The notes under the pieces were generated by a model. It was given only the letters and a program-made list of their open reading frames with translations. It did no database searches and had not been told where the DNA came from. A stretch of 64,000 nt of DNA from Phaeosaccion multiseriatum (taxonomy: Eukaryota > Protista > Ochrophyta, other classes): the NCBI GenBank assembly GCA_965112735.1, contig OZ218963.1:3100001-3164000 (forward strand), in the 5' to 3' direction. Shown here one piece after another: positions 11,205-58,427 of the stretch; position 1 is the first letter of the stretch, and every line of letters starts with the position of its first letter. The position numbers and the translations under genes were made by a program.

Positions 11205-13598
11205 ATGGCGGCGACTCCAGAGTCGAGTGCCGACTATCTGCTGCGCCTCAACTGCAAAGCTATGATGGAGTGGCTCACTGCTCGGTCCATTCTACATCGA
11301 CCCGACGACCCAATGCAGTTCTTGTTCGACCTGCTCTCAGAAAAGCTCAAGGAGAGGGGTGGTGTGGGGGGCTACGATCCCAACGCGGCCATTACGTACC
11401 TCAAGGTGACTGATCCTTCTTCCTAAAAGCAGCTTGATGACGCACGAGACGCCATACTCCTTCCATGTCTCCCATTCTCCCTCCCTCTCTCACTCAATCC
11501 TTCACTCTTGTCACTCACTCTCAGGAGAGCTATGACGATGCGATGAGCGCCGCGGATGAGCATGGCATCATCCACTCGGCCGCCATGGAGAAGGCGCAGC
11601 AAGACAGAAGAGAGAAGATCGCGCTGCTTGACCAGCAGAGACAGAGCAGGGGAGGAGCCTACCATTTGGACGCAACAGCCGCTTCTTCCTCTGCTGACAC
11701 CGGTGAGGCAGGTGCGATCAAGACGCCCTTGTCCGCCACAGGAGAAGGAGGGGCGAAAGAAGGAGAGGAGGCAGGCCAAGCACCCAGGTCTAACCCTCAG
11801 GACGGTGACGGAGAAACCCAAGCCTCCCAATCGCACATCCTGAGTACCCAAGAGATTGACTTTTTGGCAGAGCTGGAGCTGCCCGACGACGCCGCGGCCC
11901 ACGTGTCACAGATAGCGGCTTCCCTGGTGAACGCCACATTCACCGCCTACTACCACGAGGACCAGACAGACGGGTCGCTGCATCTGTCCACAGGTGCGAG
12001 CAAGACAAGAGCGCACTTTCGCTTCCTCGTACTGTTGCAACGCATAGCCCTCCTCTTGGAGACTCCATGCCAACTTCGCGCGTCGTGTCTTGGTGGTGGT
12101 GGTTGGGGGGGGGAGGTTGACTTGTCACTCACTGCCAAGAAGCCCGTGACTCGCTCTCTGTCTCCGATCGCTCGCGCAGAAACACGCCCGCGAATTGGCC
12201 ACGATTTCACTTTTCCTTTTGCCTGTTCTCGGCTGTGTCTTCCTCTTTCCCCCCACCCCGAAACCTGTCCACAGAGGAGAAGGTCGGGGAGGATAAGCCC
12301 AGGGCGCAGCTTGGCATGGGTTTGGTGGGTATTGCAGCCAAGACGGGAGATGTGGTCATGGTAAGGGACGGACCGTGCGATCCTCGCTTCGTGCCGGAAA
12401 CGGATGCGCCCAACTGTGAGGTAGGGCCGGTGCTTTGCGTGCCCGTTTATCACCAACGCGTGCACCGTGAGGGTAGGGAGGACGGGGAGGACGGGGAGGA
12501 CGGGGAGGGCAAGGCGGCGGCTTTGCAAGGGGTGCTGCTGGTGGGGCGAGGCCCTGCCGCTACACCGTTTACAGAGCGGGACGCGAGATTGTTAAAGCAA
12601 TTCTGTAGCACGGCAGGGGTGGTGATGAAGAACGCCAATCAGTTCCAGCACGAACTGAGAGAGACACACAAGTTCAAGGCCATGATCGAGATTATCGGAG
12701 CCATTAATGACGACCAGGAGCAGGTAGGTCGCGAGTCGGGTCGAAAGTGCGGCGTTGAAGTGTTTGCTGCAGGACCTGACTACTGGACGAGTCAAAGCAA
12801 TGTCTGGTCAGATGAGACGCTGACACGCCGAAATGAATCCCATCTGCCCTTCTCGACTCGCCGGTACATCCTTCCTTGCCACCTTCAATCGTCGAAACTG
12901 TTGCAACTGTCGACAGGTGGACCACCACATGCTGCTGTACACGATCAGCATTAAACTGCCAATGATTTGCGACGCGCACCGCTGCACCGTTTACCTGGTG
13001 AGTAGCGCACCCAGCTTCCGAATCCCTGTCATGCTTTCTCGTTGATACTTTCTATCACAATCCTGAGTGTGTTTGTCCCTTCTCCTCTCTCCCAACGCCT
13101 CAACATTTCTAGGTGGACAGTGGAAAGCAGCAGCTCTGGGCCGTGCAGGTTAGTTGCTACTAGTCTGTGCTGCGCTCGTCATTCCCTGGCTTGTTGCTGA
13201 CTGCAGTACCTGAGGACCCGAGCTCCGAGCCTACCTGTACAGTTACCTCTAACTGTTCCTACCGCTGTCTTTACTCCTCCCAATCTGAGTGATGGGAGGC
13301 TTGTCTGTCCTTCCTTTCTAATCCTTTGTCGACTCATCTGTCCGTTTCTGTAGGGGGGCATGAACCTCAAACTGCCCATGGACAAGGGCATTGCAGGGCA
13401 TGTGGCCACAACCGGGGAGACTGTGAATGTGCAAGATGCCTACAAGAGCGAGCACTTCTTCCAAGACGTGGACAGGGAGAATGGGTACCACTCCAAGGCC
13501 ATTCTAGCAATGCCCATATGGTCCACGGATGCGACGATGGCAGGAGGAGAAGCAGGAGGAGCAGCAGCGGCAGGAGGAGGAGGAGGAGGAGCAGGAGG

Positions 13599-13629
<31 letters not shown>

Positions 13630-14094
13630 GCAGCAGGAGGAGGAGGAGGAGGAGGAGGAGGAGCAGCAGCAGCAGCAGCAGCAGGAGGAGGAGGAGGAGG
13701 AGGAGGAGCGGGCGGCGAGGACGCGGAGGGAGGAGAGGGCACGCAGCAGCAACAGCAACAGACTGTCATCGGGGTGGTGCAACTCATCAACAAGGTGGCC
13801 TTTGGGGACATTCACGGGGGAAGCTTCACCAAGCAGGATGAGGACATTATGAAGACGTATCTCAGTATGGTGGGGCCGATGCTCACCAACAAAATCTTCC
13901 CCAAGAAGAAGGCCAACAGCACGCTGCCCGCCGCCGGAAAAGAGAGTCGTCCGACCGCCACGAGTCCCGCGGGGGGCATGAAACGCATCGCGTCGCACGC
14001 CGCCAACACCAACCTTCAACCCATCGAGTGCGGGGGCGACTTGGAGGACGAGCAGGAGGAGACCATTACAGAGGCGGCGGGAGAGGGAGGGTGA
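11205..14094 (+). CDS. RIIa-like dimerisation/docking domain plus two GAF domains, no catalytic domain (6 exons)
   Basis: N-terminal YLLRLNCKAMMEWLTARSILHRPDDPMQFLFDLL is D/D-like. GAF-A: LGMGLVGIAAKTGDVVMV..DPRF..VLCVPV. GAF-B: RCTVYLVD..QLW..LPMDKGIAGHVATTGETVNVQDAY..ILAMPI..VIGVVQLINK..FTKQDE. Confidence 0.85.
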
Positions 14095-16802: not shown

Positions 16803-19102
16803 TTATGGCGCTATTGATAGCAGGGACTCGCTCCCCTTTTGCGTCACGCGCGCTCTGCCCTCTTCCTCATCCTCCACCGCAACCTTCGGCTCCTCCTTGT
16901 CCTCCTTCTCTGTTCGGCTGTCTCCTCCTGTCGCCTCTAACCCCCTTACTCCCTCCTCTAACTCTGTTGCGCCTACACTGCTGCCACCCACGTCGAGCAC
17001 ATCGATGGTGTACGCGCGCGTACTTGCTCGTTCCTCTTGCTTCTCCTCCCAGTCCTGCCCTGAGCCTTGCCTACCGAGGCTCCCACTGCCATTGCTAAGC
17101 ACTATTGTTGACGTTGCCGCCGTACTGCCGCTCTCCAGCCCACTCCCACCCCCACTCCCGCCCCCTGCGCTGCTGCTGCGGCCCTCCTTCGTAGAAAGCG
17201 AGGCCGCCTCCTCTGCCGTCAGAGAGCTCTCGAAAGTGCTGGTGAGGTCGCTTCGCTGCTGCTCCTCCCGGTACTTGGCACGCACGCGCTTCTCCTCTTC
17301 TTCCTCCTCCTCCAAGGCCGCAAGTGTGTCACTCCCCGCCAGCCCCTTCTCCACCCACATGGCCTCGTTGTCCTCGAGGTTCTCCATGCAGACGGCCGCC
17401 TCCGGAGTGTCCAGGAAAGCGACCCACCCCTTGAACAATGGCTTGACAAGGAAATTGATGAAGCCCTGCAAGAAGCAATGAGATTTCGCGCATTATATGC
17501 GTGAGAAAGCGTGAGAAAGGTAGGCAAGAAGGAGTGGCACAGTGGGCTCAGGAAGAAGACAGACCTCGATACATGATCCCTAACCCCCACTCGATAGAAT
17601 ACTTGAATACGGCATTTGTTACCAGCCGGAGTAGGTACTCTTCCATGTATCCAAGCTCCTCCCCCTCCCTAAGCGTGAGGCGAGAAACCAAAACCGCAAG
17701 AGAGCAAACTCCACTCCCTCCCTCCCTCACTCCCTCCTTCACTCACCCACTCACCCACCCACTCTCAATCACTCACTCACTCACTCACTCACTCACCTGC
17801 TGGCTGTCGGCAATGCCTGTGGTGTTCCTGTCGCACAGCGGACTGAGCTCCAAGCCCATGCGCTGCTCCTCATCCCCCTGCAGGAAGAACTCCTCCACCA
17901 CGGCCTTGGTCCACTTCAGGTGCAAGGCGCGCGTGCGTGTGGGGTGTCCAATGTCGGCGGACTTGATGCACATCTTCATGGCGGACATGTACGTGCGGGT
18001 CTTGTTCTCCTCGCCGAAGTCGGTAACCTGTGGGTGCGCGCGTCCATGCGTTTTTGTTGAGTGCGTGCGTGCGTGCGTGCGTGCGTTAGTTCGTGAGAGT
18101 TAAAAGAAGGGGGATACGGGGGGAGAGCGTCGGTGGCAGCAGCAGTAGGGCGTTGAACGGCTTCGCTTAGTTCAGGAGAGTGCACAAGTGTAAGGGGGGG
18201 TGTTATTTGTATGTGTTTTGACTTGTGCGCCAAGCAAGCGATGGGCTGGATTGAAACAAGGAGGAGGATGATTGGAGTGAATTGAAGTGGAGCGTAACCG
18301 TAACCGATCAACACACCTGAATGTCTGCGAGATGCGCATTGAACTCGCCCAGCAGGTCAAAGTGCAGCTTGAGGTCCGTGGCCAGCACGAGTGGGATCTG
18401 TTTCATGTGTTTCATGCACATACGGGGTGGAGGGGATGGGGCAGACATGGCATCACCACCACAGAGAGGGATGGGTGAGTATACAGTACACAGCTCTTCC
18501 CTTAATACACGTAAGGGACAATCCCTCTACATCCTTTCCCGTCCAAACCCTCTAACTGCCCAGTCTGGTTGACGTGAGCGACTACCATGCCTGCGGACAT
18601 GAGTCATGCTCATGTCCAAGCCTGTCGGTACCGCGTACTGACCATAGTATCCCGGATGTTCTTGACCGTTTCCGCCTCCACGTCTCTGAAGAAGTTACAC
18701 CTGTCATTCCGGAGCACGCGGAAAGCCTCGGCGAGATGATAGTTCTCCAGTACACTGGTTTGTTTGAGATTGGGGTTTCGTTTTGTGTTGTTCGGGGTGG
18801 GTGGGTGGGGGGGGGGGTGGGATAATGTACCCAAACGTGTTGACGCAAAATGGAACGGTCGGTCAGGGGTCAGAGGTCCACGGTATAGAGGGTTAGACTG
18901 AGAAAGAAGGGGAAAGAAGGGGAAGAGTACAGGGGTTCCTGTCTCGATCCATACCGATGGAGTCAGCGACATCACCGCATGCCTATACACTTCTATCCGG
19001 CTTGAGAGCATCTGTGCTTCCCCTCTTGCCTTTCCTCTCCAGGATCGAACAGACACACGCTTGTAGATGAGGGGAAGCTCACCGCGCGCACACACACACA
19101 CA

Positions 19103-19146
<44 letters not shown>

Positions 19147-22100
19147 CACCTGACGTCGTTGTAGATGAGGGCAAGCTCATCGCGCGTCTTGATGAGGAAT
19201 GCGTTGGACCTTCCCGGGTGCTTAAAGTCATGCACGATAGCGGCGAGCAGCAAACTAATGCGCTCGATATCCGTCAAAGACGCCCCGAGATTGCAGCGAC
19301 TACAGAAGAACAAGGGAGGAGAACGATTGCGAGGGGGAAGGGGGGGAAGGGGGACAAGAGGATGGAAGAAGGCTTAGGCGAGTTCTGTTTTACCCGCGTC
19401 GAGAACGCGGGAGGGAGAGTGGAGACAAAAAGAGATACTTGAGGAGAGTGTAGGCGAGTCACATTTGTTCCGCGTCAATTTCCCTCCGTGGTCAACTCTC
19501 CTCTTCAACGCGCGGGCCCGGAGCGATTGTCAAACGCGTGCACACAAGCACAAACACTCACACACACGCACTCTCTCTCTCACGCACACACGCACAGTAT
19601 TCTCTTATATATATATTGGTACTCACTGCATGAAAAAGTGTACCCCTTGGGTGACGTCTGCTGCATGTCTCCTGTTGTGGTAGACATTGAAACAGCCCTG
19701 CTCGTCCCCCGATCCGTAGCCCCTCTCGATTTGGATCATTGCCTCCGTGAAGTGCCGCTTGCTCAGATTGAAGTGGTGGAAGAAGTTGTACTGAGAAGAG
19801 AAGAGAAGAGAAGAGAAGAGAAGAGAAGGGCGGGGGGGGGGTGGAGACAGAGATGAGAGGTACATCCATAGTCGAGGCGGAAAGAAAAGCTTCCTCATCG
19901 TTGTGTCCACCCACCTTTTGGCTGTCGAAGAGATAGTTGCACACGCTCACAAGAGGGTGTCCCAAGCTGACTTCATCAAGTTCGAAGGCGTTGAAGTCCC
20001 AATCATCCACGCTAAGCAGCTGCTCGAGTAGGCCGTCGTGTCCACCGTTCAGCTGTGGGCGATAGCGCGCAAGTGTGAGCAAGGGCGTGTCTTAATAGTA
20101 AGTAGTGAGACACAACACACATACGCATTTAGACCAAAAGTTGGCAAAATGCAATGCAGCAGGGGCGACGCATGTGAGCAGCAGGCAAAGCCAACAGCAG
20201 CCAGCGGCCACAGCAGCACAGCTCTGATTGCACGGGACAAAGAGTACTTGGCCCTGCGCGGCACAGACACAGACCAACAAGAGCGGAGACGAAGGTCGCC
20301 TAAGACAAGCGAGAGCCGTTACAAAGAAACAGAGGGTCGCTCCCTTCCCCTCCCGCACTTACCTCTTCCGAGAGGTCCAGTGGAGAAGAGGACCCAACGC
20401 TGCTGCCATTGCCATGACCGCTGGGGTCTTGGGAGACAGCAGAGTATGCTGCAGCAGCGGCAACAGAAGCAGCAGCAGCTTCAGCAACAGCGGCACTCCC
20501 GCGGCCCCCTCCTCCTCCTTGCACAGCATCATCCTTGGACTCTCCTTCTCCTCCTCCTCCTCCTCCTCCTCCTCCTCCTCCGCGTGCTGATGAGACGGAG
20601 CTGCGAAGTCTGCCGAGTACGCTCTTGCGTACGCTGCTATGCCCTCCATCGGACATGGTGGTGCTAGCATTGTTGCTTTTGGCGTCGAGCGATGCCGCGA
20701 GCATCTGCGCGTGCACCTCTGCGCTCGGGGGAACGCGACTGGCATTGGCTACCATCTCGTTCACACTATAGCGCCGCGTCTGCGGCTGCGAGCCGTACTC
20801 CTTCCAGTAGGCCTCATTTCCACGCTGGGTGTGCGTGCGTGCGTGAGAAGTGGGGGGGGAGGAGCAGGGGGGTGGGGGCGTGAGTGCCTCCTCAGGCGTG
20901 CGACTATGCTGTGTCACATCCGCGTTCGAGAGGAGAATCGGTCTCTCCACCTGTACTACAAGTCAAGGTACCTACAAAGCCAAGGTTCCCTTGCACTTGC
21001 TTGCGACTACGACCAAATACCCCCCCCCCCTCCCCATACCCACACGCAATCGCGAGCGACGAAACGCCCTCTCGAGCGACGAAGTGCTCTCTCTCTTCCT
21101 CGCATTCGCACTCTGTGTACTTCGCAATCCTTACCTGCAGGCCGAGGTGGACGTAAATCTGATTGTGCGCAAGCATGTGCAGGAGGCGCCGCAGCTCCGC
21201 CTTCTCCTGCTGCGAAAAGACGTTACACACGGGGCTCACGGTCCGTGCCACGTACTTGTACAGTTGCACTGCCGGAGCGGCTTCGTACTCCCCCCCCCCC
21301 CCCCCTTCGCCGTTTATCGCGTTCTCCCCGCCAGATCCGGCCCCGTTCCCCTCTCCCCCACCACCGCCGAATGACCCACGCATGGAGGTGGTGCCCCCTT
21401 CTCGCCCCACCCAATAGTGGCCCATAAAGGCTGCGACGACCCCGGCCGTCCTCCCCAGGGATACAAATCCCGCGGCCGGGGTGAGCAGGATGAGACTAAA
21501 CGACGTGACAATGGCATAGCTGTCCATTACGTTCAGCCAGCTGTAGGAGCGAACACACAAACGACAAGGGCAATTTGAGATTCGGTGGGGCATGGAGTAG
21601 AAGTAGAAGGGGGCTTTAAGAAAGGAAGAAGGAGAAAAGAGACAAAAGAGTCTGCCAGCCTCCCTCCCCACCGCGTGGGTGCATCATGCACTGTCTAACT
21701 CTCCTCGCCCTTCCTACCCCACCCCCAACCAGCTCAGCTCGCTCAGGTCCGTTCAGTTCAGTTCTCCTTCCGTACCTCGAAAAGTACGACAAGCCCGATG
21801 CACTGAGCCGTAGTCCGAGCTCCACCATAAAGAGTCCTGCTATAAATGCTTGGGCTACCCTTTCGCTCTGCCCCCAGTTTGAGCCGATGCGGTAAACGCG
21901 TGTGTCTCCTCGGGTATTGTACTTGAGCACGAAGAAAAGCACCACCTCGAGCACCACTCCGCCAGCGACGATGGCCCACGTCACGGGACTATTGAGCCAC
22001 GTCCGCATGTCGTTCTTAAAGCTGTGGGCGTGGCGCGGAGGGGATTGGAGTGGGCGGAGACGCGGGTGGTAAGCGTAAAGGACGGAACACATTCGTAGCG

Positions 22101-23007
22101 TGGAGTCCACCCGTCTGATATCCGCAGCTACAGCACGAACCGACACAATTCCATGTTGCTCCATGGATCTCCGACCGTCGAGCGCTTTCAGAGCCGGTCG
22201 AGCAAGCTGTACATATCGTCTCTTCCCCACGGATGATAGGTAGGAGCAGTAAAAACACACATACACACACACAACTTGTACTCTTTCCCTCACCTCATAT
22301 CCTCCTCCTGCTGGTCCAGCTTCCTGATTTGCGCCTGCATGTCCTCCTTAAAGCGCGTGAAGCTGCTCCGCCTCCTCGTGAAGGGCTGTTGCGAGGTGAA
22401 GCCTAGTGTGCTGTTAATACGCGCCAGAGACGAGCGAGTCGAGTTCTGCACGCTGATGCCGCGGCTGTTCGGACCACCCAACGAGCTGACGCTCTGCGGA
22501 AGGCGCGAAACGAAAGACAGAGACAGGACGCGACAAGACAAGACAAATCAAGACGATGACGGAAGGGGAGAAGGAGGCAGGGAGATTCATGAGGCGAAGA
22601 TCATACACAGTGAAACCTCCTCTCCCCCCAATGTCCCTCTGAGGCAATCGCAGGGAACACCTTCTCATGCCCCCTCCCGCTGGTGCTCCATCTTCACCTC
22701 AGGCTTCCAAGATCATCATCTCTTCCTCTCCCCCCTTCCGTTCCCCCGGCCTATCTCTCTTCGCCACGGTCGGTACCCCTCCCTTCCGTACCTCGCGCTC
22801 TCTCGGGGACCCCTGCCGGCCTGGCGTCGCCCTCCCCCCAATAGAGTCACCCCCCCCGGTCGCCCCCGTGACTAACATCATCGGGGGACCAAAGTCCTTC
22901 AGCGAGAGGCGGTGCGTCGGCGTGGGGTGGTGGTAAGAGGTGTGGCCCCTCTCGTGGTGCCCTCCCCCGCCGCCCCGCTCCAGCCTCTCGTGGTGCGGGC
23001 CCGTCAT
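16803..23007 (-). CDS. Class I 3',5'-cyclic-nucleotide phosphodiesterase with N-terminal voltage-sensor-like 4-TM domain (about 12 exons)
   Basis: Catalytic motifs: WDFNAFEL, YHNRRHAADVTQ, HDFKHPGRSNAF, SVLENYH, LATDL, KSADIGHP, EEFFLQGDEE, SQQGFINFLVKPLF. Upstream in-phase exons encode S1-S4-like helices. The start codon is uncertain. Confidence 0.88.
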
Positions 23008-23539
23008 CGCCTCGAAGCTTCGTAGCCTAGTGCGCCCCCTCCGCCTCCTCCCGAGTAGCCCCCCCCCCCCCCCCCCTTCCTCACTCCCCCCCTCCACCTT
23101 TGATGGAGGGGTTGGCCTGGTACGGCTGCCTTTCTCAAGCACCCGGTGGGATTGTGCAACCAAAGGAGCGCAAGCTTGTTCACATGGGTAGCCCACGCCA
23201 GCAGTCAGCAGAAGAGTGCGAGAGAGTGCGTTCTTGCACCAAAGCCGAGCGTAGAGTGGGGTTGGTCGTCCTACTTCTCGAAGTAAGTTGCTTTGAGTCT
23301 GCTAGGAGGAAAGGACCGAAGTGACGGTTATGGTTTGCAACATGCCCCCGGGGTTATTGACATAATGTCTTTGGCGCATGCGTCCGGCAAGCCTTCTCTT
23401 TGAGCAGATCAAGGAGGGCAGCACAAGACCAGGCCAGCTTGTTCTTTGTGGGGGGGGGGCTCTTTGGTGTGGTAGGTTCTAGAGCAGGGTGCAGGAGGAA
23501 GCAGGAAACCTTTTGCTTTCCATCTATGGCGAGGAGGAG

Positions 23540-26500
23540 ATGAGTGCTGCTGGCAGTGTATCGCGGGGGGGCTTGTGGCTGTGCTTCCTTGCGGCCGTGC
23601 TCTCCGAGGAAGGGACCTTGGGCAGAGTACATGGCTTCTCGCTGACGCACAGCTCCGGGTGGAGCGTTGCGAGTCGGGTAGGGAAGGGCTCGGGAATCGG
23701 CGGCCCAACGCGGAAGGCCAAGACTCTTGCCTTTGGAGCCTTTAGTAGCCCGTCGAGCTTCGGGCGGACGGGGCCAGCGTCCGCCGCGAGGTGAGTAAGA
23801 CACTTTCCTTGCTGGCGAAGGAAGCAAGACGGCCATCTCTTAAGCCGAGCAGTCTGATTTGATTCTTGCCTCTTGCCTGCCTAAGTCGGATCTATCTTGT
23901 CCCCCCCTCCTCCTCTGTTTCAAGTCATGAATGCGAGAGGCCCACGTTGCAGACAACGCCGAGCTGTTGGAGCAATAGCAGGGGCAGCAGCACCAGAAGG
24001 AGGGGCATCAGTAGCAGCAGCAGTCTCTCAAGTAGTCGTAGCAGTAGGAGCAACAGTGTCTTTCACGTGGAAGGGGGTCGGCCTCTCTCCGCCTCGGTGG
24101 CAGGGCGCAGAGCTTTGGGGGAACGCAGAGGGCGGACCGCAGCTCCAATCAGTGCACCTCAGCTGCTACCACCGTTGGAGAATTTCGACCATCTGAAGGT
24201 GAGAACACAGAGAAATGATGGGGTAGAGAAAAGAAGGGAGGCAGAGGGAAGGAAGGAGGGAGGAGCCTTGCGGGCGGGCTGCAGAGAGATGGGGGCATGC
24301 CGGAGGAGGGAGGAGGGAGAGGGGGGAGGTGTTGTCGAGACGGGACTGTGGAGCCAAGTCAGTCCTCACGTCTATGCTCTCTGGTGTTAGGCCCTCTTCC
24401 ACTGTCGGTGGGGTGGCGCACTCTCGTTGCTTGCACGTACCTTCTTGTCCTCTTGTCCTCTTGGGGATCCAACGTTGGTGTCCGCCACGTTTACGTTGTT
24501 CAATCTCCCTCCACAGCGTGTGCTTGGTCGGCGCATGGTGTCCGCGGGAGCTGGCGGTGTCCAAGTAAGTAAGAGTTGCGTCAACAAGTGATTGGGGAGG
24601 ATGTATTTTGACGGCGGCCACTCTGTGACAAGGAGGAGATTGGGTTGGTCTGTCTCTTCACACAGCTGCAGAGAATGCGAAAGCAACACACTGCTCTCCC
24701 TCCCGGGCCCCGCCCTCTCTCCTCTCTCCTCTCTCCCTTCTCCCCCCCCCTCCCCGGAACCAGCGTGAGGTTGTATTGCTCCTCTGTTGCTCTGACCCCA
24801 TCCACTCTCCCCAACGAACGAAATTAAAAAATGTGCAGACCTTGGCTGGCGCAGGGGCAGGTGCCACCGCCATTGTCTCGGAGGCCCCGGCGAAGAAGAA
24901 GGTCATGGTGCTCATGAGCGATACAGGAGGAGGGCACCGGTGCGTTGCTTTACTTGCCATGTGGTGACTACTTAGCAGCAGAGACAGAGACGGGGGGAGG
25001 GGGGAGGAGGGACCAAGCCTCAAAGAAGCATATCTTACACTTTTTTTTGTGTGTGTTTGTGTCTCTGGCGCGGGCCCGTTGTGTCCCCCTCCGAAGAGCC
25101 ATGTACTGTGTGTCCCTCTTCTCTAGTTTTGTTGTGGTCTCGCTGACTCTTTCTTGTCCCTGTTTATCTTCCCCTCTCGTTCGTTTTGCATGATGATGAT
25201 GATGATGATGATGATTCTCCCTTCCTGCACCTTCCTGTAGGGCTTCTGCCGTGGCCATTGGCGAGGCCTTCGAGGCTGACTTCCCCGGGGCGGTGGACGT
25301 GGACATTGTGGATATCTGGACGGACCACTCGGTCTGGCCATTCAACAGGTGACTTGACCAACTGGGCAATAGGGTTAAAGAGGTAGCTCAACTTATGCAG
25401 TGTGCTTGGTAGTGTGCTGGTAGTGTGATTGGTACTCACAGCTGGTACGTAGTACATGAGATGCTCTTATCGTTATGCCTCTCTTCGCTGGAAAGCCCCG
25501 CCTTCTGACTACCTCCCTCTTACGAGTACTGTGTGCTGTCTTTTGCTGCGTGCGTGCGTGCGGGTATGTGTCTGCATGCACGTAGGGCTGTGCCAACGTA
25601 CAAGTACCTGGCCAAACACCCTACTCTGTGGAAGATGTCGTACTACTACGGACGCCTCAAGGCCGCTCGCTTCGTCACCAACCTTTGGACGAGACTGACG
25701 TGTTACGGCAAGATGAAGACAGTCATTGAGGAATGGTAAGTCGCCGCAGCAGTTCATAGACATGGAGGTGTTGAAGTCTCGGGGCTTCGTCGATTTCTCA
25801 AGGCGGAGAGGGAGGGGAGGAGAGAGAGGTACATGCGCCGTGACTTTCGGGATGTAAATCCGTCATAGCTTCACCCCGATCGTCAGGAAGTGGGGGCTGC
25901 GTTAAGAAGCCGACTGTCGGAAGGAAGAAGAACGTCTTGAATAGTCTGCCCTTCACGCAGCGCAGGGGAGACGGTCCACGCATCCCATCCGCCCACTAGC
26001 GGGGATTGCCATCCCCATTTCCGTCTCCACGACATATACCTGCCACCAACCCTCCCACCCTCTCTCCCTGCCTCTCTTCCCTCCGCGCTCTCTGCGGCTG
26101 CTTTCTTCCGTTACTCCTCTCCACCCCTCACCACAGCGCTCCTGACCTGATCATTAGTGTGCATCCGCTCTGTCATCATGTACCAATGAAGGTACAGACG
26201 ATGGCAGCAGAAGGAGGGGCTCTCCGGGGAGACGGGGGGAGGGAATCGAGGAAGGGGCGGACATAGGGTCGGGTACTTGGCAGCACAGCAGTGACGCAAC
26301 ATAAGAGGGGCGTTGATGGGCTACCTAACCCCTTCCTTCGCTGCTCGATTCCGCTACAATTTGTGATTGATTTCCCTACAGGCGGTTCAAAACATCCGCG
26401 AGGAACGAGGTGACGTGGACAGCATCCCCTTCGTCACCGTTGTGACTGACCTGGGCAGTGCCCACCCCACCTGGTTCGACAAGAGGGTGGATGCCCTGTT

Positions 26501-28288
26501 CGTGCCCTCTCCGGTGCTGCAGAAGGAGGCGCTGAAGAGGGGCATCGCGGAGGAGAAGGTGCATATGGAGGGGCTGCCGCTACGCTCCGTCTTCTGGGAG
26601 AAGGTAAAGCAATCTGATGTAACGCAAGTCTTGATGCTTGTGGTAAAGCAATGTGATGTTGCTTGAAGGAAGGGAGGTCTTTTGAACACTGTGAGGAGTG
26701 GTGTAGAGACAAATTGTAGAAGCAACGGGCCACCAGCCGTAACCACCACAACCACCACCATGTGGGAAGAAAGAGGTTCTAAACATTTGCTATCAAATGG
26801 AAGTGCATCATCGCTCAGACGGCTTCTCCTGCCAATGTCGGTTGTCTCACGTCTTGTCGTGCTGCTGTCGTTCGGTCTTTTGTTTCGTCTACCATAGGAC
26901 TCAAAGGATAAGGAGGAGCTACGGGCGACTCTCGGCTTGATGCCGGGCCTGCCCACCGCCCTTGTGGTAAGCCGACGCGATCGGACCTTTCTTCACGTCT
27001 TCCTCGCTCCCACCTTTCGCCTCCCCCACAGCAGGGCCCATTCATTTCCCTCGTGTTTTTTTTTTTACCTGAGAGGAGTGGGGAGTGGCTCGTTGGCCAG
27101 TACCCAAGCTTGTGCCCAAGTTTGACCCCAACCACTTTACTCACACATGTTGAATCTGACCTTTGACCTTGCTGCGGCACACTCTGGCCTTGCGGCTGCA
27201 CAGGTTGGCGGGGGTGACGGCATCGGCCGCATCACAGACATTGCGACTCAGCTTGCAGTGACCATGGAGAAGGATCTGGAGTCGAGGTGAGGGAAAAGAC
27301 ACAAACACGTCACGCACGCACCCGCATACGCACCCACACCCACATACACACCCTACGATACGGGCACCCATCCCTCCACCCACGCTTGCGACAAGAATGT
27401 TCGCAAATAGCGGAGCTGGGGAAGTGAGCCCTAATTAAGCGTGTCCGTGTCCGTGGACAGTATAGGGCATTCTATATATTGCTGGAAACAACCTGTGACA
27501 GTAGGGTGGAGTATCAATCCCCGCTGCGTTTTCCAATTTTTCATTCCTCCCCTTCCTCCGCCGCCCCCCCCCCCTTTATGGCCCACACAGTCAGTTGATC
27601 GTTATCTGCGGAAATAACGACAAAGTCAAGGACGAGTTGGAGGCCCGCACGTGGCCCTCCAACGTCAACGTGGTACGTGCGCATGTTCTGGTTCGGAGTG
27701 TAGGAAGGGAGCTAGGTCTTCCACCCTTCTCGCTTGCAAGTCTGGTGGAGGGGGGGAGGGGGGCGGTTGGAGGAAGGGGCAAGCCCCACACTCTTTTCCT
27801 CCTCTCCTCTTACGCCACCTGCCCGTTCAATTAACACAGGTGGTGAGAGGCTTCTCCACCAACATGGATGAGTGGATGGGAGCTTCTGACCTGCTAGTCA
27901 CCAAGGTGCGAACTTTCCTCGTGGGGAAGGGAAGAAAGGACGACCTAGCACACTATGAGAGGAAGCGAAGCGTAAACACAGGGCCCTTCCCCGCGCGGCG
28001 TGCATTATCTCCATTCGAAATCCCAATCTGCGAATATGTCACCCCCTACGGATCAAAGACGGTCAAACACGGCGTGAGCTTTGCACCATAGAAGACGAAG
28101 AGAACTAACGGTCCATATGAATTGGCCTTTCATGCATCCCCGTGTCCGTTTGCCCCCACCTAACCCCAACAGGCCGGCCCAGGGACCATCGCAGAGGCAA
28201 GCATCAAGGGACTGCCGATCATCCTCAGCTCTTTCCTGCCCGGGCAAGAAAAGGGCAATGTGCCCTACGTGGTCGAGGTGAGCAGTTG

Positions 28289-30283: not shown

Positions 30284-32359
30284 ATGAGGAGAAGACGCCC
30301 TGATGCAGTTTCAGGCTCGGAGCGTGTGGACAAAGGTGGTGATGGAAGCAGCGGTAGTCGACCTGGGGAGGGAAAATCTGCCCTGGGCATGGGGAAAGGG
30401 GTTGCCTACGATTTATGGAATGCCGATCAAGAGCAACGTGACAGCGGTGGTGCTGCACAGTTCTTTATGGGCATTGACTTGGGCACGACAAACTCGTGCG
30501 TGGCGCTGTGGCACCTCGACAAGAACAGGGTGAAGATTGTGCGCGTGGGACTCCGAGATGATGAGATGGAAAGGCTTGCTGAGGAGGAGAGCAAGACGAA
30601 GAAGAACAAGGGCGGCAAGGCGGCTCAGCAGGTGGTAGGGTCAGACGGCAAGGAGGTTCGTACCATGCCGTCTGCGGTTTTCTTTGAGGAGGGACAGACA
30701 AGACCGTGGGTCGGCCATGCCGCGGTGAGGAGAGCAAAGGAGGTGGGGAAGGCGGTCGTCATTTCGTCCAAGCGGCTCATCGGTCTCCAGGCTTCAGACC
30801 CCGTGCTTGACGAGATGATTGGGGACCTCCCCGTGCGAGTGGGCGGCCACACAGGCACTGGAGAAGCGGTAATCGAGCTGCCCAAGGGTTCAGGGCGGGA
30901 CTTCGTCACCCCTGTAGAGGTGGCAACGCTGGTAATCGCAGAGCTCAAGCAGCGGGCTGAGGCTTGGTTGGATGAAGGCAAGGTGAGTGGATTGCATTCC
31001 CCAGTAGAAGGCTGTGTCATTGGTGTGCCAGTGCATTTTGGAGAGGCGAGAAGACGAGCTACTCGAGCCGCAGGGGTGGCGGCAGGCTTCAAGCGTGTTG
31101 TGGTCCTGGGAGAGAGCTCCGCAGCCGCCATGGCTTACGGCTTGTTCGTCGCGGGCTCCAAAGTCGTAGTCACCTTTGACTTTGGTGGAGGCACCCTCGA
31201 TGTCAGCGTGCTGAGGCTGAACGACGGCACAGTTGAGGTACTCAGTACGGCGGGGGACAATCACCTCGGGGGAGACGACATGGACTCACTCCTCTTGCAG
31301 CACTGTCTGCGCGAGTGGGGCGCAGATGGCGACGCCGACGACGAAGAGGGCATGTTGTTGGAAGAGGGTGAACTGCAGGAGCTACGCGGCGCCTGTGCTC
31401 GGCTGAAGGAGACTCTTTCCGTCCAAGAAAGTGCCAGCCTGCAGTTTCTCGTCGGCGGCAGGAAGAGGCAGCTGCACCTTACGAGAGGGGCATTTGAAGA
31501 TCTCATTAGCGGCCTCGTCGCCCGGGCCAAGGCTGTTGTACAGGAGGCGCTTCGGAATTGTAGTCGTAGTGGGAGTAGAAGTAGTAGTGGTAGCAGTCGT
31601 GGTGGTAAAAGTAGCGGTACCAAAGGCCTCCTGCCCAGTCAAGTGCAAGAGGTGGTGCTGGTAGGAGGTTGTAGTCGCATACCGTCTGTTCGCGCCATGC
31701 TCATGGCCGAGTTTGGGCGAAGGGTGGGCGATGATGAAAAGGAGCGAAAGGGAGGCATCCAAGAGCTTTGCTGTGCAGTCAACCCCGACGAAGCCGTGGC
31801 AGAGGGCGCCGCCATTCGGGGGGCCATTTTGTCTGGCGTGGCTCGCGGAGTGTTGGCGGACATGCTCATGCTCGATGTGTTGCCCATGGACATTGGCATT
31901 CTCTCTGCGGATGGGTCTATTCACAAGATCCTGAGGCGAAACAGCCCCCTACCTGTCAGTGGGACGGTGGAGTTCCTGTTGGCTGACAGGGAGCAGAAGG
32001 GGGTGAGCGTAGACGTACTGGAAGACGGGCTGCCCATGCAGGTCTTCAGCTTTCTCCTGAGCCGTGTTCGTCTCGAAGACGTCCCGTTGGAGGAGCAGCA
32101 GCAGCAGCGCAAGGTTAGCGTGACTCTGACCATGACGGAGGAGGGCGTATTCAGGGTAAAAGTGGTGGACAACTGGGAGGCCTACGCGAAGCGATACGAG
32201 CACAGACAGGCGGTCATCCTGGTGTGCTACCTCGCTCTCCTCTGCGTGATTTACGTTGCTTGTCGAGTCGGCTTTGCTACCATGAAGCCCGAGTACGACG
32301 ACCTCTTGAGAAAGGTTGAGGAGAGCTATAGCATCAGCGACGAGAGCGAGTTCGACTAA
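30284..32359 (+). CDS. Atypical intronless Hsp70-family protein with truncated substrate-binding domain and C-terminal transmembrane helix
   Basis: GIDLGTTNS, SKRLIG, DFGGGTLDVS, GDNHLGGDDMD, VLVGGCSRIP, NPDEAVAEGAA, linker MLMLDVLP. Terminal hydrophobic AVILVCYLALLCVIYVAC. Single 691-aa ORF. Confidence 0.9.
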   Translation: MRRRRPDAVSGSERVDKGGDGSSGSRPGEGKSALGMGKGVAYDLWNADQEQRDSGGAAQFFMGIDLGTTNSCVALWHLDKNRVKIVRVGLRDDEMERLAEEESKTKKNKGGKAAQQVVGSDGKEVRTMPSAVFFEEGQTRPWVGHAAVRRAKEVGKAVVISSKRLIGLQASDPVLDEMIGDLPVRVGGHTGTGEAVIELPKGSGRDFVTPVEVATLVIAELKQRAEAWLDEGKVSGLHSPVEGCVIGVPVHFGEARRRATRAAGVAAGFKRVVVLGESSAAAMAYGLFVAGSKVVVTFDFGGGTLDVSVLRLNDGTVEVLSTAGDNHLGGDDMDSLLLQHCLREWGADGDADDEEGMLLEEGELQELRGACARLKETLSVQESASLQFLVGGRKRQLHLTRGAFEDLISGLVARAKAVVQEALRNCSRSGSRSSSGSSRGGKSSGTKGLLPSQVQEVVLVGGCSRIPSVRAMLMAEFGRRVGDDEKERKGGIQELCCAVNPDEAVAEGAAIRGAILSGVARGVLADMLMLDVLPMDIGILSADGSIHKILRRNSPLPVSGTVEFLLADREQKGVSVDVLEDGLPMQVFSFLLSRVRLEDVPLEEQQQQRKVSVTLTMTEEGVFRVKVVDNWEAYAKRYEHRQAVILVCYLALLCVIYVACRVGFATMKPEYDDLLRKVEESYSISDESEFD

Positions 32360-35172: not shown

Positions 35173-36315
35173 GGCAGCGAGGGAAAAAGGAGAAGGGGAG
35201 GTTTTAGAAAAAGGTAGTGCGGGAAAGGGAAAGATTACAGCAGGCTAAGCACGGGCCTAGAGGGTGATTTCCGCTTTCTTTTTCATAGGTCTTCTAGTTG
35301 CCTCTACTCTGGGAGGAGAAGGAGAGAGTCGACAGATAGGGGTGTGGCGTGTGTGGCGGCGCCGCAGGCGGAGAAAATTTCTCATTTTTTTATTTATTTT
35401 TTAATTTTTTTCTCTCACTCATCCACTCAACACCCACCCGCACCCACCGCGCACCCCCTCACTCAATCACATACTCACTCATCCAGCCTAACCCTAACCC
35501 TTACCCTCGTGCACCTCACTTAGCCCTAGCCACAACCTCTTTTGAAGCAAGGATTGACCCACAGAAACCTCAGAACCTCAAACCCAAACTCGAACCCTAA
35601 CCCAAAGTCCCAGTGCACGAGATTCTTAGAAGCATTCCGGAATCCGCCCTGCAGAGGCCACCAGAATAGCAGAAAACCGTCAGGGGCCGACCAAAGATAG
35701 AAGGCCTTCCTTCTCTTCTCTCGGTTTCGGTGTGACTAGGTTTCGGGTTGGATTTTTTTTGGGGGTTTTCTCTGCCTCGGGAAGGGTTTTGTTTCATAGA
35801 GTACCGCAAGGACTGTGGTATTGCCCGGACTGCCTTTAATGTAAATTGGGTTTAAAGATTATTTCGTGTTCTCTTTCCGCTTCGCTGCCCTGCGAGGAGT
35901 GCATGCCTACAGAACAGGTGTGCGGCTACCATTGGTCGGCCCCACGCACGCGCCCGCGGTCGCGGGGATGCCACCTAGAGGCCGCCTAGGACTGAAAAGT
36001 CAGCGGCCTAAGGCGGCTCACCGGCCGCCGGCCTAGGCCTAGAGCCCAGGCCGCTAGGCGTGCATGGCTGGGGGCGACACTCTCTTCGTAGCATAACACT
36101 CGCTACGTGTTAGATTGGCTTGTGAGAGGGAGCCTGTCAATGGCCGAATTTTCGGATCTGTGTGTTCCAGCTTCCCACTATAGTGCGGCCAGCGGAGGGC
36201 CGGTAGCATTCTCTAGGTGACGATGTGCCCCAATCAGGGGTCGATTCTACATCTCCTTCCGTGGGCATGAATCGGGAGCTGCACTCTGTGTATATGGTGC
36301 CATGTTATTAGGATG

Positions 36316-36666
36316 TTAGCCTCGCAAGTCGAATACCTCCCCGTGTGTGTGATCCCGTTGGTCCATCGCGTACGCGTGAGTGTGAGACTGCCGATACGCC
36401 TCCACCTCGGCTGTTAGCGTGGCTGGCAGGCGGTGGTAGCCCTCCGTGGTGCATACAGTGGCATACTCCCGAGTGATGAAGGCCAGTACGCTGTGTTTCA
36501 AGGCCGAAATTTGGAGGGCGTCTGAGTAGTGGTAGATCGAGGCAGCATTGTCGTGGTCCAGCACGCCCCAGAGGTAGCCCACGCACAGGGCGACGAGATT
36601 GTCGATGGAGTACTGTACGATAGGTAGACAGGGGGAGCCGAACAACAACAAAACACAGCGATGAGC

Positions 36667-36698
<32 letters not shown>

Positions 36699-39600
36699 CC
36701 GAAGAGGGACGAGGCTTGTTCGCTCTTTCTTAAGGTGGATAGCACTTTGGGGTAATGAATAAAACAACCCGACCCGACCACCTTAGGGGTAATACCCCCT
36801 GGGGACGCGCCCCTGCCCACCCTCACCCTCCCCACCCACCAACCTGATTGGCAGCCACGAGCAGCTCCATGATGTCGTTGGGATGATCCAAGCGGAGAGT
36901 GTCCGTGTAGAGGTAGGTGAGGAGGGAGAGGAAGACGGACCGACGGATCTCCCGAATATACACCACGTCGCTCACACTCTCCTGCCACCCGTTGAGCAGC
37001 ATGGCCCGCAAGGGCGGAGAGCGGAGAGAGAGAATCATGCGATGCACTGACAGTCGGCGCCGAGGATTCCTGCGTCTCGTCCCAGCCTCCTTTTGAACGA
37101 TTCCTGCTCCCCCGCTTCTTCCTCCTCCTCTTCCTTTTCCTCCTCCTCCTCCCGCTGCTGCTGCTGCTGCTGCTTCTGCCGCTGCTCCTGCTGCGGTGGA
37201 GGCGTTGTGCAAGACGGCGGCCCGGTGAGCGGGTGAATCCGAGGCTCCTCCCGGTGGGGAGAGCAAGTCGTCTCGACCCCACATAGGGCTGCTGCCGTCT
37301 CCGCTGCCCCCTCGACCGAGTGGGGGTGGCGTGGATACATTGAGGCGGCCCATAAGGTCCAGAGCAGCGAAAGATCCGCTGGTCTGAGTGGTAGTTCCGC
37401 AGCTTTTGGCAGCCCAACGAGAAGGAGAAGAAGCAGAAGCAAGCAAGCGCTCTTTCGTGTGGTGGTCAGCTACTTGTTGCTGTTCTAGCTGTTGTTGCTG
37501 TTGTTGTCCATGGCTGCTCTCTTTCCTTCCGCCCGGCAGCCGCAGCGGGACGAAGGGCGAGCTCGGGGGAGAAGGCGTGGACGCACACGAGAAGTATTCC
37601 TCCTGCAATGCGTCGCCCTCGGCCTCCTGCCCGCTGCTGCTGCAGCTGTTGCTGCTCAAGGCGTCGCCGCCCGCCGCATGATTATCATCGTCTTGAGGCA
37701 TGTCGGCGATGCAAGAAGAGAGCTTGCTGGGAGCGTGAGCAAAGGGCTCCCGGTACTGAGCGCCCAGGGGAGAAGGGGTGCTCGACCGGAAGTCAGCAGC
37801 AGCAGGAGACGCCATTGGTGAGCCGCCCGCAGAGGAGCCGGTCGGGGAAGACAAGCACGCGTGTTGCGAAGGATCCAGGAAGGAGTAGTGCGCCGTGTTG
37901 GTTGGCGTAGTGGGTTCGATAGAGCTGGTCCAAGGGTCAAAGTCCAAGTGCACATCTGCAAATGTCGGTGTTGTGGCCGCAGCACTAGTGCTTGCGCCTC
38001 CGTTTCCGCTGCCGCTTCCGCTTCCGCTACTCCCCCCCCCGAAACGGTCCCCATCTTCGCCAGTGCTTGTCCTCGCTCTCTTGACACTTCCACCCTTCGT
38101 CTTGGCGATGGACGGCAGCAAGGTCTGCAAATCGCAGTGCAGCCTACCCACGTGGAGCACCACTGGAGGCTCCGGCCCCGCATCGTAGAGACGCACTTGT
38201 GCTTTCGTCCACGTCCACTGGGGGGGGGGGGGAGGAGTGACTGAGGCGGTGGCACCCGGCGCTTGTGCTGCAATCCGCGGGGGGCTGGCGGAGGGCTCAT
38301 CTACCGCTGGAGCCGAATGCGGAGGTGCACAAGGCGGGGCAGCGCCAGCACCCGCACCAGCACCCGCAGCCGCACCCGCAGCAGCACCAGCAGTTGGTGA
38401 TACAGCCGCGGCCCGGCCCGGTATCAAGCCTGCCTCCAGGGCGTAAATGCTGGTATCGACTTCCTTGTTTCTATTCGCATCCCCCGGCCCCGGCGGCACT
38501 TCATCAGAGCCCCCAAACACGAGGAACCGCCGACCGAGCTCCACAAGGCCGCTGCGGCTCCGTGGGCAGGCTTGGATGCCTTGAGTAAGTACAGGAGTCC
38601 AGCAAACGTCCAGAGGGCCGGCGGCAGAGAAGGAGGGGGGAGACTGACAACAGCATCGCAGCGAGACAGGGGGAAGGTGGCGTATAACAAGAAATAGAGA
38701 GGTGGATTAGATGACGGCGTGTTCACTGGGCCTGCTAGCAAAGGAAGGGAGAGGGGAAAGTTCAGTTCTTCACGGGGGCGATTCGGGGTGGGGACTCTGA
38801 AGAGCAAGCCCAAGAGCAGACACCGCCGAAATGAAGCTCCCCACTTGATGTACAATGAAGAATACAACACAGTACAGCACACTCAACACGAACCATGGTC
38901 ATGACGAATACGTCGTTGAATGCCTTGTGTCCAGAGGTCCCTCCGAAGAGCAATACCGTCCGACTTCCTCGAATAGCCGTCATGGAGTGGCCATATCTCG
39001 CACAGGGAGACGTACCATTCACATTCACCTCTTCCCACCGGAGGCTCCCAAGGTTTCCGCAGCACAGCACATGTGTGTCGCTAAAGAGTGAACCCAGCCC
39101 CACACCTCCAAACACCACCATCCGGTCTCCTCCTCGGCTGGCAGGCACGTGTACGAGGGCGGCCGAGTGCGCGAGCCTGGGTCCTGGCCAGGTTCCCCTC
39201 ACCGTCGGCTTGATCCACAAGTATCGATAGCCATGCGCGTTGTTGCCATCGAGTTGCTCGACTTCACCTTCACCGGCAGGGCTGGAGCCCTTGCTGCCCA
39301 CCCTGCTTCCCTCGTCGCGGTGATGACTGTTGTCCTTCGCGCCCCTCCCTCTCCAACTGGCAGCAGGGCCCTCGCTCACGCTGCCGCCCCTCCGCGGACT
39401 GCCCCCCACCCGGCTCACATTGAGTACGCAAACCGTGTTGAAAGGCTCTCTTGCGGCGGGGGAGTAGCCTCCGAAGAGCACAAGGTTCGTATCGCGGGAG
39501 ATGTCGCGCGAATAGAGCTCGCTCGGGCCCTTGACGAAGTACTCGCTCCGCCCCTCACGACGAACACCCTCTTGCTGCCTCCTGGAATATACCGCCCTTC

Positions 39601-42600: not shown

Positions 42601-43618
42601 CCAGTCTGTGTGCAGTGCAGTTTCACCACCTGACACAAGGGAAGACAGTACAGGTTGCGTCGAGAAGAGAGAGTGAGCCAGGTCATGAGAAGGGAGGGGA
42701 GGGAGAGAGGAAGGGAGGGAGACAGACACTACTGACCTGTTCCTCGCTACTGCCGCAGATTATCAACCTCCCACTACTGCTGTAATAGGCGCGGGTGAAA
42801 TTGTCTTCCAGGCCCGTGCGCGGCATATCCAGCTGGAGATGAAGCCTCCCGTCGACGGCCAGGTACTGCTTCACCTCATTGTCCACGGCCGAAGTCAAGA
42901 GAAAGCTGTCGTCTGGGCTGAAGCAGAGCATGACATGACCCTGTGAGGAGTGGCACGTGTAGATGGAGCGATTGTTCTCCGCCGTCCGTGCGTCCCACAT
43001 CTTCACCGTCTTGTCGAAGGACGAGGTCGCAAAGAGGAATGGGCTGAAGTTGGAGAAACGCGATATGTTTATGTGATCAGTGTGGATGCCCTCAAACTCC
43101 CGCACGACTTTGGCAGTTTCAAGGTCGTAGAGGCGCACATTGGAGCTGTACCCACTGGCCAGCATGAGGTCGTCGCTAGCGTTGACGTGCACGGACGTCA
43201 GCTTGTCGAAGCTCTCGTACGAGCGCACAATGGGCTCACACTCGGACACATCCGACCAGGCCCCGCTCCGCACACTGCCGCCGCTGCTGCTGCTGCTGCC
43301 AACGCCAGACCCCGATTCGTCCCCACCCCCTCCCGTATGCCCACCGGTGTCGCACATACGAAGAGAGCCATGGCTGGACCCCACAATGAACCGCCTCGCC
43401 GACTTCCTGAGCCAGCACAGCCCCAAGATTGGGTCATGGCGAGGTTTCGTCGCCTTGTTGCGAAAGTGAGACAGCACCTCGTTTCGACCCACGTCAGCGA
43501 CCACCGTCTCGCCCTTCAGCGTTCCGAAGACGAGAACATTCTCTTCTTGAGGATGATACTCGAACTGCCGGGGGCGATACCCACCCACATGAAGCACCGT
43601 GGTCTTCCAAGGCTGCAT
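36316..43618 (-). CDS. DHU1-like WD40 (WDxR) - BTB/BACK - Kelch repeats - BTB/BACK fusion protein
   Basis: WD40 part: RPRQFEYHP, TSSFDKTVKMWDAR, YVQSLRGDP. BTB1: ADVALV..HAAVLSCRSPVL..VLEYLY. Kelch: GHTC/HSA..LVFGG..W repeats. BTB2: VHRMILSLRSPPLRAML..LLTYLYTD. The WD40 end and BTB1 lie in one open frame (40341-42686). Confidence 0.85.
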
Positions 43619-43915
43619 GATTCGATTCAAGAGGGTGGAGGGTTATTTCCCCATCATTCCCCCCCCTCCTCTACTCCTTGCCCTTCTCCTGAGGAGGAAG
43701 TATCCAGTTTACGGGACGAGTAGGGGTGAGGTAGCAAGGGCGGCTTGATTGACTGCTTCCTTACAGCAGGAGCGGCGCTTTTCTCGATATTTCGATTTTT
43801 TCCGACGACGGCAATTAACGTTACGATTACGATTTCGCCGGGCGGACCTGATTGGCTCCTGTGCTGTGGAGCTCACTCCTCAAAGGGGATTACTTAGGAC
43901 AAGAGAGAGAGAGAG

Positions 43916-57745: not shown

Positions 57746-58427
57746 TGGATAATGGGTAGGACCGCAGCGGCCAAGGCAGAGCAACGAAGAAGGGCAGGGC
57801 CAGCAAGAAAGGAAGGAAGGGTGAGCGTGAGGGGAAATGTGTTTTCCGCATACAGTACCATAGGGGTTTGGGGCGCGCCAGATAGGGGGATACGGGATTA
57901 AGCTTGGGCTTTATATATTTTGCAGCTGACTCCCCTCCCACCAACTGCAGCCGTGGAGGGGGTCATTTACATATTTTTCGGGGGGGTTTTACCACTCGAT
58001 TTGCGTAAGAATCGCCCAAATGGCCCGTTTTTTGGGGGTCGGGCGGCAAGGGGGAGTGCTCTTGCAGAAATGCTGACAAGTACGGAAGGGAAAAAGCGAT
58101 GAAGCCGAGAGATTATGGATCGATAGGCATCTCAAAGAGCTACACGAAGAGCTTTAGCGCTTCTCCCAACCCTTTTTTTTTTTTCTCTTCTTTATGATTT
58201 TGTTATTACTTACACTAAAAACAGTATATAATCTTCTTTTGATGAAGACAAGGTACTTACGTACAGAGAAGGGAAGGTGACTTTTCGGCACCTTTGTGTA
58301 CCTCTTGTGTAACATCCATTCACCAGAGTGGTATGTGATACCGTCCACGGTTTCTCGTGTCTAAACAGTGTCACGACATGACTTTGTCCGTTCTGGCAAC
58401 AGGTATTCGATGCATGTGGCCGCCTCC

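Follow-up and report, generated by a model that had tools for sequence, protein, structure and literature searches.

A predicted class I phosphodiesterase gene with a degenerate, voltage-sensor-like membrane module in the stramenopile Phaeosaccion multiseriatum

Introduction

Contig OZ218963.1 of the Phaeosaccion multiseriatum assembly (GCA_965112735.1) contains, between positions 3,100,001 and 3,164,000 of the forward strand, a gene which appears to join a membrane module of four helices (S1 to S4) to a class I cyclic-nucleotide phosphodiesterase (PDE). We call this whole stretch of 64,000 nucleotides the window, and all positions given below refer to it. It is eukaryotic DNA, with about 57% G+C, and the gene lies on its minus strand, from 23007 to 16803. 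An earlier note, made from the letters alone, described the gene as a fusion between a voltage-sensor domain and a PDE, with an S4 helix which has lost most of its charges.

Very few enzymes are known to be controlled by an S1–S4 voltage-sensor domain, and among them only the voltage-sensing phosphatases are well studied. In this lineage of flagellated algae, a PDE with such a module would tie the electrical or ionic state of the membrane directly to the breakdown of cyclic AMP (cAMP) and cyclic GMP (cGMP). Two Toxoplasma enzymes, TgPDE4 and TgPDE16, have an "ion transport domain" which is so far unexplained and which such a PDE would help to interpret. With nearly all S4 charges lost and the charge-transfer centre kept, this gene is a natural test case for the fate of the scaffold when steep voltage sensing is gone: It may become an anchor, an ion or ligand pocket, or a weak sensor. 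If the module is only an anchor, the case amounts to a modest annotation point.

Structure of the gene

The gene was rebuilt from the raw sequence of the minus strand. It has twelve exons (Table 1): Every border is canonical GT..AG, all joins are in phase, and the frame has no stops until the final TAA. The predicted product has 1022 amino acids, counting a tentative first exon which starts with the ATG at 23007. The exons coding for the membrane helices, 22021–21776 and 21540–21135, are bordered by CAG and GTACGG in the first case, by CAG and GTAAGG in the second. All exons from 20824–20363 to 17465–16803 also have GT..AG borders and are in phase and stop-free, and the two upstream exons, 23007–22792 and 22493–22294, fit in phase as well. 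Exon 5 has phase 0 at both ends, it could be skipped without loss of the frame.

Coding capacity was estimated with a log-odds score of codon usage, for which four open frames from elsewhere in the window served as training set and the introns of the gene as background. The proposed frame has the highest score in all twelve exons. The score is negative in all frames of the eleven introns; these are themselves the background of the score, so that only the exon result is independent.

The catalytic domain

Five consecutive exons, from 19790–19627 to 18027–17797, match the Pfam family PDEase_I (PF00233) when each of them is translated separately. The matches are colinear: In exon order, they correspond to positions 1–18, 21–67, 70–106, 108–130, and 142–209 of the profile, and three of them are above the gathering score (E 3e-18, 7e-15, and 6e-6). 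Among PDB sequences, human PDE1B is the first match of the largest catalytic exon (2.6e-17), followed by PDE3, PDE4, and PDE7, while PDE5 and PDE4 are closest to the exon with the HD motif (3e-11).

The motifs expected for catalysis are found: YHNRRH, HDFKHPGRSNAFL, LENYH, ATD, SADIGHP, QGDEE, and SQQGF, the last one with the purine-clamp Gln. The HD signature, H-D-x-x-H-x-[AG]-x-x-[NQ]-x-[LIVMFY], appears together with the other metal ligands (H-N-x-x-H and the later Asp residues) and the purine-clamp Gln, all of them in the expected order and with the expected spacing. The exon at 20052–19915 presumably codes for the N-terminal helices of the catalytic fold, which it resembles by eye when set against PDE4.

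Judged by these profile matches and motifs, the catalytic part is a complete class I PDE domain, and it is probably active. A language-model search with one PDE exon gave only PDE fragments, none of them with the combined architecture. No relatives of the catalytic exon appeared in a metagenome scan or in a word-indexed search, within a length range which leaves out full-length relatives of single exons.

The membrane module

In order to compare the N-terminal helices with voltage sensors, we have used a reference of bacterial sodium channels (BacNav). A degenerate DNA pattern for their selectivity filter led to 120 bacterial loci, from which 87 complete open frames of 220–330 amino acids were obtained, with a consensus typical of BacNav; two of them were verified as members of Pfam Ion_trans (E 1e-42 and 1e-45). 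A hidden Markov model (HMM) of the voltage sensor, with 121 positions, was built from the S1–S4 region of 79 non-redundant sequences. The reference was chosen by its pore, so the sensor profile is not biased toward the query.

This HMM matches the spliced N-terminus (amino acids 131–275) with 22.2 bits and an E-value of 5.9e-9 for a single test. The alignment covers 56 residues without gaps, it includes S2, the S2–S3 turn, and S3, and it runs straight across the exon junction. None of 15,000 shuffled sequences reaches this score, the maximum is 15.5 bits; they include shuffles of the whole sequence and of blocks of 12 or 6 residues, which keep the hydropathy profile. The reversed sequence gives −0.9 bits. 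When all six frames of the whole window are scanned, only the one which contains the S1–S2 exon is matched, with 12.9 bits (4.1 for the next best). The score goes up by about 9 bits, from 12.9 to 22.2, when exons 3 and 4 are correctly joined.

The comparison of profiles with hhalign leads to a longer alignment. The spliced N-terminus is aligned with the BacNav profile with a probability of 93–95% and a P-value of 2e-8, over 114–122 columns, from the amphipathic helix preceding S1 to S4. The S1–S2 exon alone is aligned with columns 14–83 of the BacNav alignment (70 columns, P 7e-4), with the pre-S1 helix, S1, and S2 in register. The S3–S4 piece alone falls on columns 96–112 (P 0.068), colinear with the match of the previous exon. 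In addition, the protein-language-model features of the S1–S2 exon are nearest to clusters of Ion_trans fragments, which make up 66 of 100 matches, with a score of 0.94 and 190–203 shared features.

The HMM score, the shuffles, the hhalign results, the colinearity of the separate exons, the six-frame scan, and the language-model features all point in the same direction: On this sequence evidence, the membrane module is homologous to S1–S4 voltage-sensor domains.

State of the sensor and the linker

In the alignments, Phe203, Glu206, and Arg210 in S2 and Asp227 in S3 fall on the invariant Phe79, Glu82, and Asp103 of BacNav. The charge-transfer centre is therefore intact. Glu164 in S1 occupies the position of a nearly invariant Asn of BacNav. 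Other positions have changed: The outer Asp of S2 is replaced by Ala, and the Trp of S3 is off by one residue. In total, six polar or charged residues are kept inside the membrane helices.

The only arginine of S4, Arg251, is aligned with R1 (Arg122 of BacNav), while R2, R3, and R4 correspond to Gly254, Ala257, and Met260. All four arginines are invariant in the BacNav reference set, and S4 here does not have the three or more Arg or Lys residues, one at every third position, which characterize a voltage sensor. Since the arginine ladder is absent, we class the module as voltage-sensor-like and do not count it among the canonical sensors. Beyond S4 there are no more hydrophobic helices, with the exception of a low-complexity stretch rich in Ala, and there is thus no pore.

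After S4, the protein leads directly into a Gly-rich stretch which contains a run of sixteen G at the DNA level (G16), followed by a helical-looking segment of 42 residues and by the 154-residue low-complexity exon 5. In all, 263 residues separate S4 from the catalytic fold, Gly, Ser, and Ala being the commonest. Candidate mini-introns of 57–156 bases, in frame within exon 4, would make the linker shorter. We have rejected them: Their acceptors are purine-rich and most of them are shorter than the other introns of the gene.

These results confirm what the earlier note saw in the sequence. The two membrane exons exist as it described them, with canonical sites, a join in phase, and the S1–S4 peptides which it quoted, and the voltage-sensor signatures it saw in S2 and S3 are above chance. 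It was also right about the loss of S4 charges, about the absence of pore helices, and about the exons which continue in phase into a complete class I PDE domain.

Continuity of the locus

The G16 homopolymer, at 21305–21290, belongs to the coding sequence of exon 4; there are further poly-G or poly-C runs nearby, for example at 23063–23078. Four sequencing runs of one sample contain the locus, and the contigs of all four break or fray at about 21286–21310. The assembled length of the homopolymer is nevertheless supported, since the proposed frame is the only one which is open on both sides of it. Microsatellites are found in introns of the PDE gene at 19085–19149, 17715–17795, and 18040–18085, formed by (GT)n, (GAGT)n-like, and (CACG)n repeats; Logan contigs of the DNA runs also break there.

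Table 1. Features of the PDE gene. Positions are those of the window; residues are numbered from the tentative initial ATG.
Feature	Position	Strand	Evidence
Tentative exon 1, amino acids 1–72, start ATG at 23007	22792..23007	−	GTACGG donor, phase 0; codon score best in frame, narrowly; no Pfam match; N-terminus uncertain
Exon 2, amino acids 73–139, basic, Ser-rich N-terminal region, predicted cytosolic	22294..22493	−	CAG acceptor, GTGAGG donor, in phase; codon score 0.35; no Pfam match
Exon 3: pre-S1 helix, S1 at 21984–21925 (Glu164), S2 at 21861–21799 (Phe203-x-x-Glu206-x-x-x-Arg210)	21776..22021	−	hhalign, six-frame HMM scan, language-model features
Exon 4: S3 at 21539–21483 (Asn224, Asp227), S4 at 21470–21408 (single Arg251), Gly-rich stretch with G16 run at 21305–21290, predicted helical segment at 21260–21135	21135..21540	−	HMM gain on splicing; Arg251 on R1 of BacNav
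Exon 5: 154-amino-acid low-complexity linker (Gly, Ala, and Ser runs)	20363..20824	−	GT..AG borders in phase; codon score 0.32; only Pfam match spurious, Gly-rich
Class I PDE catalytic domain: exons 20052–19915, 19790–19627, 19299–19150, 18754–18643, 18397–18317, 18027–17797, and start of 17465–16803	17433..20052	−	Pfam PF00233, PDB matches, motifs
C-terminal acidic, Gly/Ser-rich tail and TAA stop (16805–16803)	16803..17432	−	Frame open to the stop; codon score 0.40; no Pfam family

Neighbouring genes

The convergent neighbour of the PDE gene, at 11205–14094 on the plus strand, contains a GAF domain (Pfam PF01590, E 9.7e-7, frame 13360–14091). A possible cyclic-nucleotide-binding protein thus adjoins the PDE gene. 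Upstream, the next gene lies beyond about 26 kb in the opposite orientation, and the PDE gene has no additional channel-like exons in front of it. The open frame at 26367–26666 (plus strand) resembles by eye the N-terminal part of a glycosyltransferase of the monogalactosyldiacylglycerol-synthase type, and would be this divergent neighbour.

A single-exon gene of the Hsp70 family, with 691 amino acids, is found at 30284–32356 on the plus strand. It is most closely related to a protein of Chrysoparadoxa australica (44% identity), to an MMETSP transcript, and to "Hsp70-like" proteins of oomycetes, with bacterial DnaK behind them. By these matches, the genome belongs to the stramenopiles and lacks close sequenced relatives in the database. 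The Chrysoparadoxa contig around the Hsp70-like gene does not contain a PDE, and there is no synteny with it. At 36300–43630, the minus strand has several long open frames in which Pfam recognises BTB/POZ and BACK domains (E 1e-10 and 9e-9). Finally, the two strands have very long, overlapping open frames at 54995–57861, a region whose composition is extremely skewed between strands (GC skew 0.34 and AT skew 0.48 at 56–58 kb). This combination suggests a purine-rich low-complexity or repeat sequence.

Discussion

The reading which we find fairly probable is that the locus contains one gene for a membrane-bound class I cyclic-nucleotide PDE, in which a degenerate S1–S4 module would act as a targeting, oligomerisation, or ion/ligand-binding part, with a shallow voltage dependence at most. 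The four N-terminal helices would derive from the S1–S4 domain of voltage-gated cation channels and would have degenerated since then: The charge-transfer centre (Phe, Glu, and Arg in S2, Asn and Asp in S3, Glu in S1) and the outermost arginine of S4 would have been kept, while R2–R4 were lost, and there would be no pore. A long linker, mostly of low complexity, would tether this module to a catalytic domain with all its metal-binding motifs. Going by these motifs, the enzyme most likely hydrolyses cAMP, cGMP, or both at the membrane, and the module would not be a steep voltage switch like that of Ci-VSP, a voltage-sensing phosphatase (VSP).

Several results weigh against this reading. The membrane exons, searched separately, do not match Pfam Ion_trans, and phmmer searches of all PDB sequences with each of these exons have not found any voltage-sensor protein, only matches to Gly-rich linkers. 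PDB should include any deposited Hv1 and VSP chains, so the specific likeness to Hv1 proposed in the earlier note is not borne out, with the proviso that separate exons are a weak test. The S3–S4 exon alone is weak in the profile comparison, and its language-model features are uninformative (a plant PGG domain, score 0.76). The hydrophobicity of S4 is only moderate, and the S1–S2 loop, which would be expected to face outward, has a net positive charge. When 1.84 billion representative proteins were searched exhaustively with HMMER, the S1–S2 exon had no homologue, the one match is a spurious tandem-repeat protein (P0001), and a word-indexed protein database and the JGI metagenomes gave none either. 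These blank searches are explained by the lack of a close sequenced relative in the databases. As for the transcript, searches for sequencing runs listed no RNA, and the four runs which contain the locus look like DNA: Introns and exons have a flat depth and there are no splice joints. The continuity between S4 and the rest of the protein depends on the exact number of G in the G16 run, where the DNA contigs break, and the contig of one run which spans 20594–22600 has a single gap, whose position is not given.

Some of these points would fit two adjacent genes, a small membrane protein with the sensor only, whose exons reach 21135 and which ends in the next intron, and a soluble PDE which starts at a Met in exon 20824–20363; the joins in phase would then be a coincidence. 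The sequencing runs show no splice joints, proteins formed by a sensor alone exist (Hv1), and the frame stays open for 76 codons past the donor of exon 4. Only 24 codons separate the acceptor of the linker exon from its first in-frame ATG, so the join between 21135 and 20824, taken alone, has a modest statistical weight. On the other hand, the 76 codons past the donor have a neutral codon score and a G+C content at third positions of 0.51, compared with 0.55–0.90 in the exons, while the 154 codons of the linker exon are open throughout and score as coding in the joining frame. A 3′ end and a promoter would have to fit in 310 bases, and Toxoplasma has proteins annotated with the same pair of domains in a single polypeptide. 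We consider two genes unlikely. From the canonical splice sites with consistent phase, the coding signature of the linker exon, the small space for an intergenic region, and the precedent of this fusion, we infer that the exons from 23007 to 16803 form one transcript. It is much less probable still that the helices form just a generic anchor in the membrane, which resembles a voltage sensor by chance or by its composition. The failure of the separate exons to match Pfam or PDB sequences, the lack of homologues of the membrane exons, and an S4 without the defining arginine ladder would be expected of such an anchor. It would have to account, however, for an HMM match which no shuffled sequence equals, even when hydropathy is kept, and which disappears in the reversed sequence, for an hhalign probability of 95% over four helices in the right order, and for a score which rises only when both exons are spliced in register.

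A different question is what a module derived from a voltage sensor may do. The earlier note suggested that membrane potential might be coupled to the hydrolysis of cAMP or cGMP, and a PDE counterpart of the voltage-sensing phosphatases, in which movements of S4 with the membrane potential are relayed to the catalytic domain, would have in its favour the real homology with sensors, the conserved Phe203, Glu206, Asp227, and R1, and the helical segment after S4. The six polar or charged residues retained in the membrane helices also suggest more than an anchor, and they make a mere anchoring role less attractive. Nevertheless, three of the four canonical gating charges are gone, and S4 leads straight into a Gly-rich stretch, with about 260 residues, mostly of low complexity, before the PDE domain. 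In Ci-VSP, the linker which transmits the coupling is structured and short, with fewer than 20 residues. A single gating charge and a long flexible tether speak against electromechanical coupling of the VSP type, and we regard voltage regulation in the classical sense as improbable. Another proposal, to which we also give little credence, is that the module is not a relic but a working sensor: Its intact charge-transfer centre has no R2–R4 to fill it, and Ca2+ or protons might be bound in the buried pocket of Glu206, Asn224, and Asp227, or a shallow voltage dependence might come from R1 alone; in both cases the signal would tune the PDE1-like domain. If this were true, the Phaeosaccion protein would form, together with TgPDE4 and TgPDE16, a second class of enzymes controlled by S1–S4 domains after the voltage-sensing phosphatases, extending across stramenopiles and alveolates. 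For the present, a membrane-bound PDE whose module serves for targeting, oligomerisation, or ion/ligand binding appears to be the better description.

Comparison with known systems

The membrane module can be compared with BacNav, whose profile recognises the region from the pre-S1 helix to S4 and whose Phe79 and Glu82 (S2), Asp103 (S3), and Arg122 (R1) have counterparts in Phaeosaccion. BacNav has invariant R1–R4 and an S5–S6 pore, while the Phaeosaccion protein lacks R2–R4 and the pore, with Ala in place of the outer Asp of S2 and a shift of one residue in the Trp of S3.

The membrane part of Hv1 consists of the sensor only; its S4 has three arginines, a coiled coil forms the C-terminus, and there is no enzyme domain. 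The Phaeosaccion protein shares with it the pore-less membrane part and an acidic residue in S1, but it has a single S4 Arg and a C-terminal PDE domain. The voltage-sensing phosphatases (Ci-VSP/TPTE) have a full S4 arginine ladder and a linker which is short and structured, and their enzyme is a phosphoinositide phosphatase of the PTEN-like kind. The logic of the topology would be the same, with a pore-less N-terminal S1–S4 domain placed on a cytosolic hydrolase. Phaeosaccion differs in its one S4 Arg, in its 263-residue linker rich in Gly, Ser, and Ala, and in the enzyme, a cyclic-nucleotide PDE, so it does not belong with the proteins of the VSP type.

S1–S4 bundles without an arginine ladder are found in TRP channels, where they are joined to a pore. 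In some TRPM channels, Glu or Gln in S2 and Asn or Asp in S3 form a Ca2+ site which faces the cytosol. The Phaeosaccion module has no ladder either, and its Glu206 in S2 and Asn224 and Asp227 in S3 are as in a Ca2+ site of this type, although no pore is joined to it. Ion binding by the module, suggested by this analogy, is pure conjecture.

A membrane sensor which controls a class I PDE fold is known in choanoflagellates: In Rh-PDE, a linker of 76 residues connects the two domains (bioRxiv 10.1101/2020.04.14.040642). In both proteins, a sensor or sensor-like membrane domain precedes the class I PDE domain. The sensor of Rh-PDE is a rhodopsin, which responds to light, and not an S1–S4 domain, and the Phaeosaccion linker is much longer and of low complexity.

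A similar architecture is that of TgPDE4 and TgPDE16 of Toxoplasma gondii, which are described as having Pfam Ion_trans (PF00520), or portions of it, ahead of PDEase_I (PMC7720076, PMC8809380); Moss et al. 2022 (PMC8809380) refer to portions of Ion_trans. According to a 2023 review, both enzymes belong to PDE "clade B", together with human PDE1 and PDEs of free-living alveolates, and are expressed only in cat stages (PMC10865986). The available portions of PMC7720076 and PMC8809380 neither call this part a voltage sensor nor test it. Our literature search has not found any functional study of the membrane domain of TgPDE4 or TgPDE16, nor the terms "voltage-sensing/-sensitive/-gated phosphodiesterase" or "VSD-PDE". 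The likeness to Phaeosaccion, where a single polypeptide is predicted, refers to the domain order in the published descriptions only, in which transmembrane helices annotated as Ion_trans are followed by a C-terminal PDEase_I. The best PDB match of the Phaeosaccion enzyme, PDE1B, fits a PDE1-like clade, loosely. The organisms are different, an alveolate in one case and a stramenopile in the other.

One of the refuting conditions set in the earlier note thus applies in part: The architecture had already been annotated in TgPDE4 and TgPDE16, although none of these proteins has been characterised as a voltage sensor. In summary, the combination of Ion_trans and PDEase_I is already annotated, and uncharacterised, in Toxoplasma, and Phaeosaccion adds a stramenopile PDE which probably bears an S1–S4 module, with its S4 reduced to R1.

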